Positions 32,412 to 40,622 of a stretch of 64,000 nucleotides of DNA are shown here, in pieces. Where the stretch lies: NCBI GenBank assembly GCA_904063045.1, contig CAJFCJ010000026.1:1-64000 (forward strand), in the 5' to 3' direction. A program made the position numbers and the translations under genes. This stretch comes from Dimorphilus gyrociliatus. Its lineage: Eukaryota; Animalia; Annelida. Each line of letters opens with the position of its first letter. The stretch's first letter is position 1. The notes under the pieces are model-generated. The model searched no databases. It was given only the letters and a program-made list of their open reading frames with translations, and had not been told where the DNA came from.

Positions 32412-34153
32412 TTACTCTTCGGTTAGAGTACGAATCTCTTGGGCTAAAATGTTTGTTATTCTCATGGCTTCTTCGGCATCTTCGCCTCCTATTTCTTTGA
32501 GTGCGTAGGCGGCCGCGTCTCTAACGCTAGAGATAAAATCGTTCCTCCATAAAAGGACTAGCGAAGAAATAGCTTGTTTTGCTTTAAGTCTTCCTAAAGA
32601 GAGACATCCGCTCTCTCTAACAAGTCGATCTTTGTCACTGAGACACTTTATGAGTGCTTTAATTACTTTTTCTTCATTTGAGCCTGTTTTTGCAAGTGAT
32701 ATTGCGGCAACTGTACGAACGTTATTGTCTGAATCATAGAGTAGATCAAGTAGAGCTTCCATAACTGCCTTAGAACGGAATTTTCCAAGATTTTCAATCG
32801 CTTCCACTCTAACAGTTGACTCCATATTGAAGACTTCTCTTATCGTATAGCTTTCAATAGCTTGCTCTTGTACACAAGTCCAAAAAGGACATTCCTCTTC
32901 GTTTATTGTACAAAAATCTAAAAAAAGAATACAAACGTACTGAAATTCAAAAGTTTTTTTTTAAAAGAAACTTACGATCATAATTCTCTTTTACCACTCT
33001 TCCCCCATTGTCAGCCACCTCCAATTCTCTTTTCAGTATATTTAGTAGCCACTTTTGATCTTTAGATTCTATCATATTGTTTAGTGCCTTATCTACATCC
33101 TTTAGAAAAGCTTCCTCAAATTCAGGATCCCATTTTATATAATTTCTTCCCTTGAAATTCTTTTCCCAGAAACTCTCATTTGATACTTTATTCTCATACT
33201 CCTTTGGTTCTTTATCAACCTTTATTGGTCTTATTGATGTTCTCGATGGATGTCGTCTAAGAGATGGTTGATTTTGAACTGACAAAATAACGAGTACAAA
33301 ATTAATATTCAACCTCTGACTTATTATTTATTAGCACCTGGTTCCATATGCTGGCTAGGGGCATTGAAATCTGCCACCTCAGTTTGTAGAACCGACTTAA
33401 TCTTTGAGGCAAGACTGAACAAATTACTCTCGTAATCTTCTTCTTCTAGAAATAATCGCCATTCAAAGCGAGCTAACTGCAGTTTCCTATAAGAATAAAA
33501 AAGAATGAGGAAGAGAATAAGCTTTTTCAATGAAATATTAAGACATATTGTATTATATATTATATATTATTATTGTATAAATTATATATTTATAAGAAAA
33601 TAGCCTACATGCCAACGTCCATTTTATTGAAAAGATTTCGCGGTTGTTCTAAAGCCACAGGGAAAATAGGTTTTTTTGAAATATAAGCCAAGGCAAGCTC
33701 ATCCTGACAGTATTTTGATTCGACAGTTTTTTCACTCAAAAGTGAAATAAAGCACTGTGAAAAATAAGATAAAAGAAAACTATTCTCTTCAATCCGTGTT
33801 AAACTTGTCACGGAATTGGAAAAAAAAAACAAAAATAAAAATACCGTGGCATCTAATATAGCTTGTCCAATTTTACTTAGAAAATCCATACCAGCTTTTA
33901 ATCCAGTAATGTCAGCCCAGACTGTAACTCCGTGTTCTTCGAGTCCACCTATCAAATGTAATAAAGAGGACATAATTATATTGTGAAAGATAATCATAAA
34001 GTCCAATTACAAACTTTTTAATCTCTTCATTTCTGCCATGTTTGCATGACTGTAGCTAATCATTACATTCTTAGGCTCGTCTAAGACGTCCACTCGTTTT
34101 TGTTCATTTTTCAATTCTTTATCAATTTTATCTGTGATACTGTTGGGCTCCAT
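32412..34153 (-). CDS. TIR domain + EF-hand-like + HEAT repeat protein (paralogue A)
   Basis: TIR_2-type motifs NVMISYSH, VWADITGLKAGMDFLSKIGQAI and SKYCQDELALA. Middle FWEKNF...IKW..FEEAF segment. C-terminal HEAT repeats (DSDNNVRTVAAISL, DKDRLVRESGCLSLG). Start codon uncertain (34153 or 34195). Confidence 0.8.
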
Positions 34154-34401
34154 TTGACTTGGAGTTCTACTGCTGTCCTTAAAGCTCTTGTACATACTGA
34201 AACTAAGTGACATAAAGTGACTCACCTATTCCTCTTATTGATTATTCAATTGTTAACTAAAACATGGTTATATCTACAATTGGGGGAGAATGTCTAACCG
34301 ACGTTTAGAAATAAAGCATATTTCTCTATCCAGATAACAACTTTACACAAAGACAGTAAGCACCATACAAGGTAAGCATTTGATATATACCACTAGTTAT
34401 C

Positions 34402-34438
<37 letters not shown>

Positions 34439-34817
34439 GTATATAGCTGCTGTAATACAGTATAATTGTAAATTATAGTTGAAAAAGCAGTAAAAAACCA
34501 AAAATTAGATATATACCTATGCAGAATTAACTATAATTTTGATAACAGAATAATAGCTTTAGAATCTTTATTATGTCCACTTATGCTTTTTTGGATATAT
34601 TAAGTATATACATATATAATTTTATAGGCGTTGCTATTAAGGGAAATAACCTTATTTTTTTTTTAAATATTACTCATTTTCTTTGAAATCTTTTGGAAGA
34701 GAGGATAGAGTATGGTTCTAAATTTTCTTACGAACCTTTATAATTAACTATTAACTGAATATATCAAATAGAATTAGGTGTAGCAAGCGGGGATAGTTTG
34801 TTGAATCTGTTTTAGCG

Positions 34818-34874
34818 CGCCATTTTCGCCGTTGTTAAGTACGGAGTAAGGTGATTGATCAATAAATGACGTCA
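34818..34874. promoter_or_regulatory. Candidate bidirectional promoter core of the TIR pair: YY1-like motif (minus strand) and full CRE
   Basis: CGCCATTTT at 34818-34826 (AAAATGGCG on minus) and TGACGTCA at 34867-34874, in a CpG-richer island between the two divergent genes. Confidence 0.5.
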
Positions 34875-35312
34875 TGGAAATTTCAGCAAATCGTATACTA
34901 TGAAAAAAATCACAAATGAGGATTCTCTTCCCGAAGAGTGATTGCTAGTAACACACCTAGTAGGCAAGTTGGATAATAAAAAAAAGCGGAGTCAGTCGGC
35001 ATCGGAAAAACGTAAAGTAAAAATCATTTAAAACATTCTGATAGGAATAACGTTATGTTAGAAATCAAATTAGACGCTTTTGGATTATAATTTTTAGATA
35101 TAAATATAGTGTTTTATTTTCTTATTTTGCATCGTTTTAATTGAAGAATAGAAACAAAAAAAAAATAAAACAGAAACTTTGTGGTAAATAGCAATTAAAT
35201 TCTTAATTTCATTTAATTAGACGCCTTTTAATATTTGAAAAAAAAAGTAATAAAAAAAAAACAAAAAATAGTAGGCTTTAGAATTGAAATAGTTCGAAAT
35301 GAAATTTTTAAA

Positions 35313-37830
35313 ATGGGTTGTGCGCCTACTAAACATGTGAATATACCGAATGGGAGAAATATTAGAATAAATAGTAAGTTAAATGATGTCGTCAACGTAC
35401 CTTAATTAGAGAATTAAAGATATAAATTCAATGTTTTAATAAAAATCCATAAACTTCGATGTTGTAACTTATCAAGAGATGTAGAATATATATGACACTA
35501 AAAAATAATTCTAAATGCTCCCTCTATATCTCTCTATTCTGTCTATATATATATTTATTTTACATCCTTAAAGATAAAGCGAACGAAAAAAACAAGGCCA
35601 TAACCAAGTCAATACCTTTCGTGTACAAACTTGTTTTAAATCTATATAAAATGTTTATTGCCTTTTTCTTTCCCTATCAGTAATTGAACCAACAAGTATA
35701 GCAGATTTTAGTGAAACGCAAACTAAAACGCCTTCGTCATCTAGAAGCATTTCAAAAACAACAATAAAAGAAACGGTTAGCGAAGAAACTGATAAACCTT
35801 TGGAAGAGAAAAATTGGCCAAGAACTTTAGCTTATTAATAATTAATAAATATGAATGAATCTCTAGACGTTCTTATAAGCCATTCTAAAGAGGATATAAA
35901 ACACGCCGAATATATTGCAGGTATGATATATATTTGCAGAAAGAATTAGAAATCATATAAATCATGACAATTGTTTACAAAGAGAGTTTATTTTTAATCC
36001 AAGAAATGCAAGCTTTTTCTTGAATATTATAATATTAATTCAATCAATAAGACCATTATATATATATATATATATATGCATTATATAAATTAGTCAGAAA
36101 ACAAAAATATCCAAAATCGAGAGGTAAGTATATAATTAACTGCTTTTTGCTCTTTCAACATCCAAACGCTTTCTTTTTTAAGAAGTTACCATAGTAACGA
36201 AAGGTATGTCTTTCTTCCTAAACAGATGGACTCAACAAATCAGGTATTGTGGCTTATCATTCTGCTATAGACTCGGCGACTGTAAAATCTGGACTACAAA
36301 AAAATGATGCTATTGTTAAGGCTAAGGTAATAAAAAATATCTCTATACAGCATATAGAGTCTTATAAATATGTATATTACAATATAGATATTTACAAATG
36401 TATTTATAGCATCATACTGTAAAATCCTTATTTTTACCAAGGAAAAATATAAAGCCAACATTCATATCCAAATATAATTTCAATACTAATTTCTTTTATT
36501 CCTTTTTTTTTAATTATCCTTAAGGTATTCCTTCTCATACTCAGCCCGTATTCGACTAAAGATGAGAGATTGAAAGACGAAGTTGCTTTGGCCTACATTT
36601 CGAATAAACCCGTTTTTCCAATTGCTCTTAAACATTACAGTGCATTAGCTGGTGATATGGATAGTGCTCTGTGAGTTTCGATTTTTCTATAATAATGTAA
36701 ATATAGTTGTGAGAATTGTTTTTCTTTAACCGGGGTCGATAATAGGAAATTGATGTTAGCAAAAATAAATTGGACATTCTTAACAAACAAAACTTCTCCG
36801 CAAGACACTATTGACGAGTTAATAAGTCAAATCAAATACCAGTTAAAGAATATATCTGAGAGTCCTTCTACCCAAGCGACTGTTGATAAATTCGACGCTT
36901 TTCAAGGTTTAAACAAGAATAGAGAGAATAGAGAGGAAGACGACGAGAAAGCTAACAACATTCGTTCTGACTTTTGGCAAATTAATTTTCAGGATAAGAA
37001 CGAAATTCAATGGCAAGAGTTTCGTGATGCTTTCATAAAAGAGTACGAAGAGAAGATATGCAAAAACTTTGGTTTTGACAGAGTCAACTGGTTTTGTGAA
37101 CTCCTTTTTGACGATGTTTTTGAAAAGTCACTGTTAATAGAGAAAGCTGCCTATCAGAAATTTATAGGAGACAAAGAGTTTGTTAGCAAAGACACTTTTT
37201 ATCAAAGACTTCGAGATTACGGAATAGGCATGTTGGCTATGAAAGAGGTTTTTGACATGAAAAGTTCTGTAAGAATAACTGCTGTACAGAAACTAGGTTT
37301 TTCAATTATTATTATTTTTTGACGTTATGATATTGTAATTACATTTTTCTTTTTCTTCTTCTTTATATCAAAAGGTTCTTTCCAAACGATTTCTGTAAGA
37401 TCGGCTCTTCTTGATCTTACGTATGATAATGATCCCAACATAAGGGCGGTTTCCGCTTTGGGCCTCGCCAAGACTGGAAGAAAGGACGACTGGATTATAC
37501 GGAGGTTAACAAGTATGTTGAACGACAACGATAGAGTTGTTAGGGAGAGTGCGTGTCTAAGCTTGGGTCATATGAAATGTACAAAAGCAGTAAGCAATAT
37601 TATTGATGTATGGTAAGTTTACACTTTTCAATTTAAAAGATATTCAAATAAGAATATTCATTACTTTATTAATACGAAATTTATTATATTTCTTTTTATT
37701 AATTAGGCGTAATGACCCAATTAAACATGTTCGAGAAGCTGCTCAAGTTGCATTATCCAGAATGGGAGGCGAAGAGGCTAATAAGGCAATGAAAATGGTT
37801 GAAGTCTTATCAAATGAAATGAAAAATTGA
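35313..37830 (+). CDS. TIR domain + EF-hand-like + HEAT repeat protein (paralogue B) with MGC N-terminus
   Basis: MGCAPTK exon, DVLISHS, LKDEVALAYISNKPVFPIAL, FWQINF...IQWQEFRDAF and HEAT repeats (DNDPNIRAVSALGL, DNDRVVRESACLSLG). Collinear with paralogue A. The junction at ~35816-35867 is unresolved. Confidence 0.75.
36185..36198. promoter_or_regulatory. RFX X-box-like element in an early intron of TIR paralogue B
   Basis: GTTACCATAGTAAC matches the GTNRCC-N0-3-RGYAAC consensus. Confidence 0.4.
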
Positions 37831-38106: not shown

Positions 38107-40622
38107 ATGTTGTCTTTATCAGGCCGTAAGTACTGTTGATTAGTTAGAAATAGATAAATATCTACGATAAAAATAGTTTGAATCAATGCTAGTAAACGAT
38201 TTTGATAACTAGGTATCGCCAAGAGGCTCACTTCCTCAACCGCCTATAGTTCTCTCAAGGACATCCTAACAAAGGAACTGGATGGAATCAGAGAAGCTGG
38301 AACCTGGAAAACTGAGCGTGTTATTACAACTAAACAAGCTTCTGTCATAAAAGTTGCAGGAACCGAGGATAAAATTCTCAATTTTTGTGCAAATAACTAT
38401 TTAGGATTGTCGGTATGATTTAATTTTTCCATTAAATTAAATATAAAAATACCCTCCTTAAACTAAATGTTCGTTTTTTTTTCCTTCTTAGAGTCATCCA
38501 CAAGTTGTAGAAGCCGGGAAGAAAGCATTAGACAGTCACGGAGCGGGTCTAAGCTCTGTAAGATTTATATGTGGAACAACTGATTTACATATGGAATTAG
38601 AAGAGAAAATATCAAAATTTCATAATAGAGAAGATACAATCCTGTACGCTAGTTGTTTTGATGCTAATGCCGGCTTCTTTGAAACAATCTTGACAAAAGA
38701 CGATGCGGTTCTGTCTGACGCTTTAAATCATGCATCGATAATTGATGGAATTAGGTTGTGCAAAGCTAGAAAATATCGCTATATTCATAATGATTTAGAA
38801 GGTTTGAGTCTTTGTCATTTATTATCACGATTTTCAATTTATTTCTCTCTCCCTCTTTCTCTGTTTCCAAAAAAATAAAAAACAAACACAAATACAGATT
38901 TAGAGGAGAAGCTCAAAGAATCTCAAGATTGTCGAGTTAGATTAATTGTTACTGATGGAGTCTTCTCAATGGATGGTGATGTTGCCAAATTAGAGTTCGT
39001 ACACTGGAGATTAGTTTTTTCATGTATCATTTTATTTAATGAAGAAGTAATTTATTGTCAATGTCTTTTGTAGTAAAATTGTACAGTTGGCTGATAAGTA
39101 TAATAGTTTAGTTTTCATTGACGAATGTCACGCAACAGGATTCTTTGGCAAGACTGGACGGTTAGTTATAGTAATGAAATATTTAATTAGTAGGATAACT
39201 TCATTACGTTATCTGGCTTTATTGTATTTGGAAAAATTATAGGGGTACTGAAGAACATTTTAACATCAAAGTGGACGTTATCAATTCTACGTTGGGAAAA
39301 GCTCTTGGTGGCGCGGCTGGCGGATATACAACTGGCAAGAAAGAACTAATAACGCTTCTACGACAAAGGTCAAGGCCGTACCTTTTCTCTAATTCCCTAC
39401 CGCCGGCTGTTGTGGCGAGCGCCTCCAAGGTAACGCCACTTTGTTACAGAGATCATTCGAAAAAATCTACTTTATTTATATACGTATGCATGAAGAAAAT
39501 GCAACATTTCCATGCTGTCTAATGCATATTGTCTTAGGCAGTTCGTTACAAAGCTGAATATTTTAAGATTGTTACTTTCTATCCTGAAAATGACTCCACC
39601 AAACAAAGAAAGAAAGAAAACAAAAAAAAAACAATCAAGAAATTTATTATCATTGTCAAAAGATTTTAGAAATAGATAAATGGATGGGAAAAAAGGGAAA
39701 AAAAAATAGAGACAAAACCGATAGGCTAGCAAGCTCTCAGGCAGACAGGCAGATAGACAGACAAGTAGACAGGCAGAGAGGAACACCACGCACTCTCATA
39801 TATATATGTCTATATATATATATATATATATCTACGTACATACATGCAATTAAATATGTTATTCCAGCAAACGGATGTAAATATATATACCTTTATTTAT
39901 ATCCATTTAGTTGAATGAAAGTCATATATAGTTTTATAAATAAAAAAAAGTCTGCTTTAAAACTCATTTTCTTGGGATAAAAATATATGACTAGAATTAA
40001 TCAAAGGAAATATAAAATAACAATATCATCTATTGTATAAATCTTCTATTTATAATTATACAATTTGAATATAATGTACAGTATATTGTGTATATATTAA
40101 TATATATATATATATATATATACTAATATATAGCATAAAATGTCTATACTGTATATTTGATATTAAAGTAAATTATAGGCTTTTTCATTTTTGTTTGTTT
40201 TTTTTTTAGGTATTTGATCTTCTGATGGAGTCTAATGAAATAGCCGAAAGACTATCAGAAAATGTTGAGAGATTTAGAAGTCGAATGACCGAAGCTGGTT
40301 TCACTTTGAGCGGAGACAGATGCCATCCAATTGCCTCTGTTATGCTTGGTGATGCTCGTTTGTCTAGTGCTTTTGCTGATGAAATGCTTAGTAAGATCTT
40401 AGTTCCTATTCTCCCCTTTTCCCTCCCTCCTTTATTAATATACTATTCATCTTGTAATATTTTATAGATCGAGGTATATACGTAATTGGATTTAGTTATC
40501 CTGTCGTTCCGAAAGGCGCAGCAAGAATAAGAGTGCAACTCAGTGCGGCTCATTCTCTAGCGGAAGTTGATAGAGCAATTGATGCTTTCATCGACATTGG
40601 AAAACAACTAAAAGTTATATAA
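38107..40622 (+). CDS. GCAT: 2-amino-3-ketobutyrate CoA ligase (glycine C-acetyltransferase), mitochondrial
   Basis: [86 protein letters not shown] and ARIRVQLSA. Short presequence-like first exon. Confidence 0.95.

Follow-up and report, generated by a model that had tools for sequence, protein, structure and literature searches.

We examined a 64,000-nucleotide (nt) stretch of the genome of the annelid Dimorphilus gyrociliatus (contig CAJFCJ010000026.1, positions 1 to 64,000; here called the window) and describe two neighboring genes, A and B, which are transcribed away from each other and are each predicted to encode a TIR domain, an EF-hand-like middle domain, and C-terminal HEAT repeats. 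The DNA is of eukaryotic type and rich in AT, and its introns are very short; window introns of about 60 to 120 bp are consistent with the published median of 66 bp for this animal (PMC7854359). We assembled both gene models manually, based on GT/AG sites and reading-frame continuity. The coding region of gene A lies on the minus strand at 32412-34195 and has six exons (34015-34153/34195, 33845-33948, 33609-33754, 33338-33486, 32976-33278, and 32412-32917). The coding region of gene B lies on the plus strand at 35851-37830, also with six exons (35851-35920, 36226-36326, 36525-36670, 36746-37296, 37375-37612, and 37707-37830), and encodes a protein of 409 amino acids that begins MNESLD. An earlier note on this DNA had proposed a divergent pair of collinear paralogues, and the gene models on opposite strands together with a BLASTP comparison of the spliced proteins (32% identity over 429 amino acids, E 3e-74) confirmed this. 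The two proteins are collinear from the first TIR strand through the last HEAT helix, and the three introns inside the TIR domain have identical positions and phases in A and B; later introns differ. All motifs quoted in the note were found in the window. Its spacing of about 1.1 kb holds if counted to the ATG of a Met-Gly-Cys (MGC) exon upstream of B; the distance between the starts of the two TIR open reading frames (ORFs) is about 1.7 kb.

We confirmed splicing of both genes with contigs from two runs. Run X1 is an independent run labeled as a coral metatranscriptome, and its contigs are near-identical to the window at B; run X2 is of an unrecorded kind and includes spliced contigs. For gene A, the joints of all five coding introns are present within a single 1405-nt spliced X2 contig. 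An additional X2 joint, 34202|34736 (CT..AC ends), links the coding part of A to a non-coding 5' exon at 34736-34914 on the minus strand, based on this joint and an X2 contig; the upstream end of this exon is undefined. The earliest in-frame ATG in the A mRNA is at 34195 and the start shared with a related species is at 34153, giving a protein of 448 to 462 amino acids, depending on the start codon, that begins M-Y-K or M-E-P. A (TA)n microsatellite is located at 34396-34446, within the 5' intron of A, and was passed over as a repeat in the read analysis. For gene B, two introns have been removed in X1 contigs (joints 35917|36223 and 37294|37373). Two plus-strand GT..AG joints in X2, 34371|34887 and 35016|35681, delimit a non-coding 5' exon of a B isoform at 34887-35016; its upstream partner is an exon with its 3' end at 34371, and downstream it is spliced to 35681. 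This transcript form begins in the 5' intron of A and enters the exon that holds the B start codon. The spliced contigs for A (X2) and B (X1) thus document expression of both genes and not just one.

Both genes are also conserved in a related species. The A orthologue, on contig L004, is 81% identical in exon 6, with a proportion of non-synonymous differences (pN) of 0.10 at saturated synonymous divergence; the B orthologue, on contig L001, is 60-77% identical, with pN of 0.13-0.24 and synonymous divergence again saturated. A and B are both real, spliced genes under purifying selection. We considered whether copy B could be a decaying pseudogene that lost its N terminus, as there are stop codons 5' of its TIR ORF, no other family member has so divergent a TIR, and the Pfam TIR_2 model barely registers on its exon pieces. 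This is extremely unlikely, given an intact 409-codon ORF across six exons with canonical splice sites, spliced RNA, and conservation in the relative at the pN given above; the divergence of its TIR is shared throughout the B clade described below.

The 5' regions of the two genes are intertwined. Non-coding 5' exons of A (minus strand) and of the B isoform (plus strand) interleave across 34175-35016, and B isoform exon 34887-35016 overlaps A 5' exon 34736-34914 in antisense. A conserved non-coding element at 34797-34967 has 86% identity over 174 nt to L004, and the introns on either side could not be aligned. It includes GCGCCATTTT at 34817 and the palindrome TGACGTCA at 34867; only half-sites were found when we searched for TGACGTCA in the Lingula and amphioxus intergenic regions. 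The element is likely a bidirectional core promoter, based on its location in the overlap between the 5' exons of A and B. On the other side of B, a class-I/II aminotransferase gene is located downstream on the same strand at 38591-39522, and an aminotransferase (product matching Pfam Aminotran_1_2) is likewise downstream of B in the related species (L001, 3432-3894). Thus, local gene order is conserved.

We next turn to the domains. Pfam TIR_2 (PF13676, curated cut-off 28 bits) scored 18.9 and 23.6 bits on exon pieces of A taken separately, under the cut-off, and at most 12.7 bits on those of B. The domain is spread over four exons, hence the weak per-exon scores. On full-length orthologues, TIR_2 reached 73-78 bits in A-type proteins and 33-57 bits in B-type proteins; P0038, the nearest full-length A-type orthologue and 47% identical to A, scored 74.5 bits, above the cut-off. 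The TIR assignment of B is therefore based on its collinearity with A and with B-type orthologues, not on its own Pfam score. HEAT_2 (PF13646) matched A exon 6 at 77.5 bits (E 9.6e-22). The HEAT_2 match on A, the TIR_2 matches on orthologues, and the collinear alignment uphold the proposal of TIR_2 and HEAT domains in both copies.

To view the whole architecture we used an AlphaFold2 model of P0038 residues 62-494, which has a predicted local distance difference test score (pLDDT) of 84.4 and shows a TIR domain, a 30-residue disordered linker, an EF-like pair, and a HEAT solenoid. In the first 150 residues, pLDDT is mostly 84-96, with 66-76 over residues 31-50. The TIR part of this orthologue model has the alternating order from betaA-alphaA through alphaE of a flavodoxin-like fold, and Foldseek matched it to the SARM1 TIR at a TM score of 0.65-0.73, with SPARTA and Cat1 also among the best matches. 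The domain thus models as a TIR fold in the A-type orthologue. The HEAT part of P0038 superimposed on PBS-type alphaRep proteins at 1.8-2.2 Å root-mean-square deviation (rmsd) with 33-36% identity, and there are four to five PBS-type repeats per protein.

The middle domain required structural comparison. In B it is located, together with the first HEAT helix, at 36951-37298 on the plus strand, and its sole Pfam hint was a weak one to Cbl_N2 ("EF hand-like," E 0.0084). A feature search of the ESM Atlas with B exon 4 as the query gave no usable match. An AlphaFold2 model built from a 28-sequence family alignment (mean pLDDT 84.3) has elements H8-13, E18-20, H21-40, H43-56, E62-64, and H65-72, that is, two helix-loop-helix units bridged through short strands. 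Every top row in Foldseek was an EF-hand protein, with E of about 0.7 and none significant. An exhaustive structural search (VIA-align) placed the EF-hand of Cbl first (Z 7.3, rmsd 2.5 Å over 76 residues) and calmodulin second (Z 5.8), below the level of a clear match for helical folds. The model and these EF-hand matches support the label "EF-hand-like" given to this helical domain in the note. The likeness to the EF-hand of the Cbl TKB domain (Cbl_N2), the top structural match, has scores below significance, and there are differences: the middle domain stands without an adjoining four-helix bundle or SH2 domain, and its loops lack acidic calcium ligands. Loop 1 of B reads N-F-Q-D-K-N-E-I-Q-W-Q-E, missing the acidic ligands at positions 1, 3, 5, and 12, and the family alignment has no conserved Asp/Asn/Glu pattern in either EF loop. 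Calcium binding by the middle domain is thus unlikely, and we refer to it as a pseudo-EF-hand.

We built a profile from the middle domain and HEAT repeats, searched it against 1.8 billion representatives, and recovered several dozen full-length proteins of about 400-740 residues, each in a single stretch. Their source names are only "uncharacterized protein," "hypothetical protein," and "TIR domain-containing protein." The family is present in Branchiostoma, Ciona, Glandiceps, Apostichopus, Octopus, Pinctada, Lottia, Lingula, Tubulanus, and Symsagittifera, as well as in the sponge Geodia and the choanoflagellate Salpingoeca urceolata. The proteins from the last two (P0062 from S. urceolata and the P0079 cluster from Geodia barretti) have the TIR, EF-like, and HEAT order and a Met-Gly start, with Asp or His at the position of a conserved TIR Glu discussed below. 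Another member, at 7413-8792 of contig L005 (ENA ERZ25071281, 40% GC), has one intron, a myristoylation-type MGGAQSS start, and Arg in place of the Glu (YCCDRIALAY); its neighbors are NHL-repeat and GST genes.

A maximum-likelihood tree recovered a B-type clade (SH-like approximate likelihood-ratio test [SH-aLRT] support 97) made up of window B and proteins from Lingula, Lottia, Octopus, Tubulanus, and Branchiostoma (Hypp510). The A-type group contains window A, the gene neighboring Hypp510 in Branchiostoma, and proteins from Apostichopus, Glandiceps, Octopus, Pinctada, and Ciona. The two clades separated before protostomes and deuterostomes did, and the A/B duplication is therefore at least as old as Bilateria. 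The arrangement recurs as well: in Branchiostoma lanceolatum the A-type gene lies about 1.5 kb before the B-type gene on the opposite strand, and in Lingula anatina the two types are head-to-head with about 1.3-1.4 kb between them. In tblastn searches of Lingula and Branchiostoma, the minus-strand gene was nearer A, the plus-strand gene was nearer B, and exon boundaries were common with the window genes. The view of the pair as a unit was supported by two old clades and the same arrangement in Lingula and Branchiostoma. The simplest reading would be an ancestral bilaterian head-to-head pair that was kept in three phyla (in an annelid, a brachiopod, and a cephalochordate) and broken in others; nothing else speaks as strongly for a unit.

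We propose, with about even confidence, that A and B are an ancient, co-regulated paralogue pair for intracellular TIR signaling proteins. Several observations weigh against this. Among other spiralians, the arrangement was found in Lingula and not in Tubulanus or Lottia, where A and B are not adjacent. In Glandiceps and Apostichopus, no B-type sequence was found in the 10 kb upstream of the A-type gene, and the Octopus A-type and B-type genes are on records of 225.7 Mb and 21.2 Mb, which we take as unlinked. Adjacency is thus dispensable, as the pair is unlinked in several lineages. In X2, the depth of the A contig is far above that of B, by a measure (depth) that is unreliable. These points suit a different explanation, in which A and B function independently and adjacency is held by a compact bidirectional promoter and interleaved 5' exons instead of by complex formation: linkage has been lost in several lineages that keep both genes, 5' exon overlap alone can preserve adjacency, and the apparent abundance of the two is unequal. 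We regard independent function as possible, though less likely than a coupled pair. It must account for the retention of orientation and of a spacing of about 1.3-1.7 kb in three phyla for more than 500 million years; such long-kept pairing is rare for unrelated neighbors and typical of functionally coupled pairs. In addition, a BB loop kept in A and lost in B fits a division of labor.

This contrast between the copies is apparent in the TIR active-site features. The TIR of A-type proteins is strongly conserved from phylum to phylum, with the consensus DVMISYSH ... VWVD..GL.AG.DFL.KIG.AI ... SKYC.DELALAYISNKPIFPV. The BB loop of A and its clade reads G-L-x-A-G-x-D-F, which aligns with L-E-A-G-K-F of SARM1. 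In B and its clade, this segment has gaps and unrelated residues, and the Glu is mostly retained. The contrast drawn in the note between a canonical A TIR and a degenerate B BB loop was thus supported by the alignment and the TIR_2 scores, and it extends to the entire B clade. In A, the Glu is encoded by GAG at 33698-33700 on the minus strand (motif YCQDELALAY), at the aromatic-x-x-x-Glu position of NAD+ hydrolase (NADase)-type TIRs; in B it is encoded by GAA at 36579-36581 on the plus strand (motif RLKDEVALAY), in the alignment column shared with A. The codon given earlier for B was correct; that for A had been placed at 33688-33690. In this column, Y-C-Q-D-E of A and R-L-K-D-E of B align with W-C-W-D-E of Cat1, so the Glu is retained in both copies as claimed, and B is without the aromatic residue of the motif. 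We take the family Glu to correspond to the catalytic Glu of NADase TIRs, based on what is known of such families. Together, these features indicate that the A TIR is SARM1-like in its predicted BB loop and Glu, and that the BB-loop pattern appears to have been lost throughout the B clade with the Glu kept.

Whether this predicts an enzyme is less clear. A family TIR profile searched against the PDB matched Cat1 best (1.1e-8), followed by SARM1 (about 6e-7) and bacterial TIRs including AbTIR (about 1e-6 to 2.4e-6). The same profile matched TLR2/15 at 2.5e-6, then plant TIRs, and TLR1/6 were also significant. The near match of the TLR2/15 scores to that of SARM1 means that sequence cannot split enzyme from scaffold, which counts against an enzymatic role, as does replacement of the Glu in some members: by Q in P0030, R in P0122 and the L005 protein, H in the sponge, and D in the choanoflagellate. 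To our knowledge, TLR TIRs share the aromatic-x-x-x-Glu motif without any known NADase activity, so conservation of the Glu is permissive and not diagnostic. The family could tentatively be seen as non-enzymatic TIR adaptors or scaffolds of the Toll/IL-1 type, TRAM-like, in which the Glu is structural. The significant TLR matches, the variable Glu, the motif shared with TLRs, and the Met-Gly start of most members, reminiscent of TRAM, all agree with such a role. Set against it are the enzymes among the best matches (Cat1, SARM1, and SPARTA by sequence and fold, AbTIR by profile) and the age of the family, which predates animals, being present in a choanoflagellate. We give the adaptor role about the same standing as independent function, below that of the co-regulated signaling pair.

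Upstream of B is a second conserved coding segment. Leader exon 1, at 35313-35373 on the plus strand, starts with an ATG, encodes MGCAPTK..., a myristoylation/palmitoylation-type start, and ends at a GTAAGT donor in phase 1. The coding part of leader exon 2 (IEPTS...TLAY), at 35681-35841 on the plus strand, is in the same physical exon as the B ATG and ends with TAA TAA at 35836-35841. Joining 35313-35373 to 35681-35835 produces a 72-codon ORF. The tandem stops end 9 nt 5' of the B ATG at 35851, and in the window the two ORFs share both frame and exon. An X1 RNA contig covering 35795-35917 is unbroken across the stops, with one mismatch, and is then spliced to B exon 2. Since this contig is continuous over the stops and spliced onward, the mature mRNA retains at least one of them. 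The proposal that MGC is the N terminus of B was therefore not upheld, as the leader ORF ends before the B ATG and RNA keeps the stops. We tried an alternative splice that would remove the stops and rejected it: only one donor/acceptor pair preserves the frame, its use would remove almost the entire leader exon that is under selection, and the RNA contig contradicts it. Just 5' of the MGC exon, an A-rich tract at 35200-35270 attracts thousands of low-complexity k-mers from X1, at a depth of 10669, an artefact and no sign of expression.

The leader is conserved as a separate peptide. In the related species (L001 and L002, from two runs), the TAA after ...TLAY is kept and the leader peptide is 84% identical. 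The spacer from TAA to ATG is 12 nt in the window versus 13 nt in L001 and L002, so the two ORFs are in different frames in the related species. Relative to L001, 18.5 of the differences in the leader exon are synonymous and 9.5 are non-synonymous, for a non-synonymous to synonymous rate ratio (dN/dS) of 0.075, and the other two frames give ratios above 1. Leader pN is 0.079, below that of the B body and near that of A. The low dN/dS, and low pN at saturated synonymous divergence, show strong purifying selection on the leader ORF and indicate that its peptide, like B, is translated and maintained. Neither X1 nor X2 contained the MGC exon joined to 35681, which weighs against the explanation of the locus given here; we infer that 35373 is spliced to 35681 from phase, donor quality, homology, and selection on an exon without its own start. 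There is no ATG in any frame across 35681-35850 (chance about 0.045), and in the X2 form joined at 35016|35681, a stop at the junction closes the leader frame, which lacks an ATG. A scanning ribosome on that form would, given this ATG-free stretch, initiate at the B ATG after four short upstream ORFs.

Orthologues suggest where the leader came from. The B-type proteins of Branchiostoma and Tubulanus begin with MGC, have the same IN-[VI]-IE-[PA]-T motif as the window leader, and continue into the TIR domain; the window leader could be aligned with B-type orthologues P0035 and P0036. In Tubulanus, exon 1 of the orthologue ends ..QIN, the exact counterpart of the end of the window MGC exon. Exon 2 in amphioxus holds the remaining leader and the first TIR elements, matching window exon 35681-35920. 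The fused forms in amphioxus and Tubulanus indicate that in the worm lineage an ancestral ORF was split within one exon, by a stop and a new start, with both halves retained. The ancestral Met-Gly-Cys leader of B has thus been severed here, with the leader and TIR ORFs conserved separately. A search upstream of the B-type gene in Lingula yielded no MGC leader. A word-based protein search, blind to full-length relatives because its stop-free references did not exceed 190 amino acids, recovered orthologous ORF fragments and related-species contigs; with leader exon 2 it gave no match, which says little. L004 ends about 100-150 nt before the position of the MGC exon, and no longer related-species contig was found. 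This animal is reported to have neither operons nor spliced-leader trans-splicing (PMC7854359), and this makes it less likely that the two ORFs are resolved in the manner of an operon.

There are two other ways to read the leader ORF. It could be a regulatory upstream ORF that throttles B translation, with a peptide of no function of its own. The ORF ends 9-13 nt before the B ATG in the same exon, and the absence of ATG from leader exon 2 in all frames fits scanning and re-initiation. We nonetheless consider a purely regulatory role unlikely, as the leader is more conserved than the body of B, and its lipidation-type start and IN-[IV]-IEPT motif are shared with amphioxus and a nemertean; such constraint goes beyond positional need, although upstream ORFs with conserved peptides do exist. 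Alternatively, leader and TIR body could be made as one protein by stop readthrough or frameshifting, leaving B membrane anchored. The window ORFs are in-frame, and by eye a +1 slip at the stop restores the frame in L001. Such recoding is very unlikely: the window has two consecutive TAA codons, a +1 slip there meets another stop, and the 1-nt difference in spacer would require two different mechanisms in two species. Separate conservation of a severed leader remains the reading that we prefer.

Loss of the leader from B bears on membrane anchoring. Across the family, proteins of the A and B types alike mostly begin with Met-Gly in a context of the myristoylation type, and this start is contiguous with the TIR in orthologues P0035, P0036, P0024, P0048, and others. 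In the window, the M-G-C-A-P-T motif (Ser/Thr at position 6) is present without being contiguous with the TIR ORF. We also sought a coding Met-Gly exon upstream of A and found none; the A 5' exon carries in-frame stops, and no predicted start of A is Met-Gly. As A starts MYK or MEP with upstream stops and B starts MNESLD, neither TIR protein is predicted to be covalently anchored in this worm. The earlier suggestion of one membrane-anchored regulator, B, is not tenable with a leader that is a separate ORF both here and in the relative, and with an A that has no Met-Gly. Nor is anchoring specific to B, since both types usually begin with Met-Gly in other phyla.

We compared the pair with better-known TIR systems. 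SARM1 is an NAD+ hydrolase with the order ARM-SAM-SAM-TIR. It is close to this family by TIR profile (only Cat1 is better) and by fold at the TM scores given above, it resembles A in the BB loop (L-x-A-G-x-x-F) and the aromatic-x-x-x-Glu motif, and both join a TIR with alpha-solenoid repeats. The order is reversed here, however, with TIR first and HEAT last; SAM oligomerization domains are absent, an EF-hand-like pair lies between TIR and HEAT, and the HEAT part matches PBS-type alphaRep and not the SARM1 ARM domain. TRAM (TICAM2) is an N-myristoylated TIR adaptor of vertebrates. The family resembles it in that most members have a myristoylation-type Met-Gly start upstream of the TIR. Unlike the family, TRAM has no EF-hand-like or HEAT domains, and it is not among the PDB profile matches listed; neither TIR protein of this genome carries the Met-Gly motif. 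Plant paired NLRs such as RPS4/RRS1 are head-to-head, co-regulated sensor/executor pairs, and the note had drawn an analogy to them. This is apt for gene arrangement, as here too TIR paralogues are head-to-head, with one TIR more canonical and one divergent. It does not extend to architecture: NB-ARC, LRR, and integrated decoy domains are absent (Pfam finds TIR_2 and HEAT-type domains only), and demonstrated homology does not go beyond the TIR fold.

The family is already recorded in databases and probably in a published catalogue, that of the evolutionarily conserved invertebrate TIR-domain-containing (ecTIR-DC) families (Gerdol et al. 2017, Dev Comp Immunol 70:145, as cited in PMC6321704 and PMC5549309). 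These are described as absent from vertebrates, widespread in invertebrates, and presumed to be adaptors or regulators (PMC6321704). The TIR-HEAT family shows exactly such a distribution. The amphioxus proteins bbtTIRA and bbtTIRC are mentioned in the literature without domain details, and no link was made between them and this family. Neither the head-to-head pairing of A and B nor the severed leader was mentioned in the papers searched, to which the Gerdol et al. 2017 catalogue was external. The family itself is known but unstudied; what is new is the conserved pairing, together with the splitting of the leader inside an exon.

Based on these comparisons, we can outline how a co-regulated A/B pair may work. 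A and B would be produced together from the shared bidirectional promoter and would act as one TIR signaling module, with A as an assembly-competent subunit that may consume NAD+ and B as its modulator. The EF-like pair and the HEAT repeats would form a regulatory end that binds proteins or ligands. The B body would be translated from upstream-start transcripts that skip the MGC exon, so that it is not lipid anchored, and transcripts beginning at the MGC exon would yield a 72-amino-acid lipidated microprotein. A more speculative step, which we rate as improbable, is that this leader peptide docks soluble B, and via B the A protein, to membranes non-covalently. If so, promoter choice between the shared upstream start and the MGC exon would switch the TIR module between anchored and free forms, and the locus would be a case of a split membrane anchor that arose by gene fission in one exon and has been maintained for a long time.

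From bacteria to humans, innate immunity makes use of TIR domains, and for animals the division between enzyme and scaffold is largely open outside vertebrates. This family is pre-metazoan and widespread and has no studied member, and its conserved pairing leads to a testable hypothesis of a two-component TIR module. The fission of the leader offers a clean natural test of the importance of membrane tethering for such TIR proteins, with both the leader and TIR halves under selection on one transcript in an animal reported to be without operons and trans-splicing (PMC7854359).

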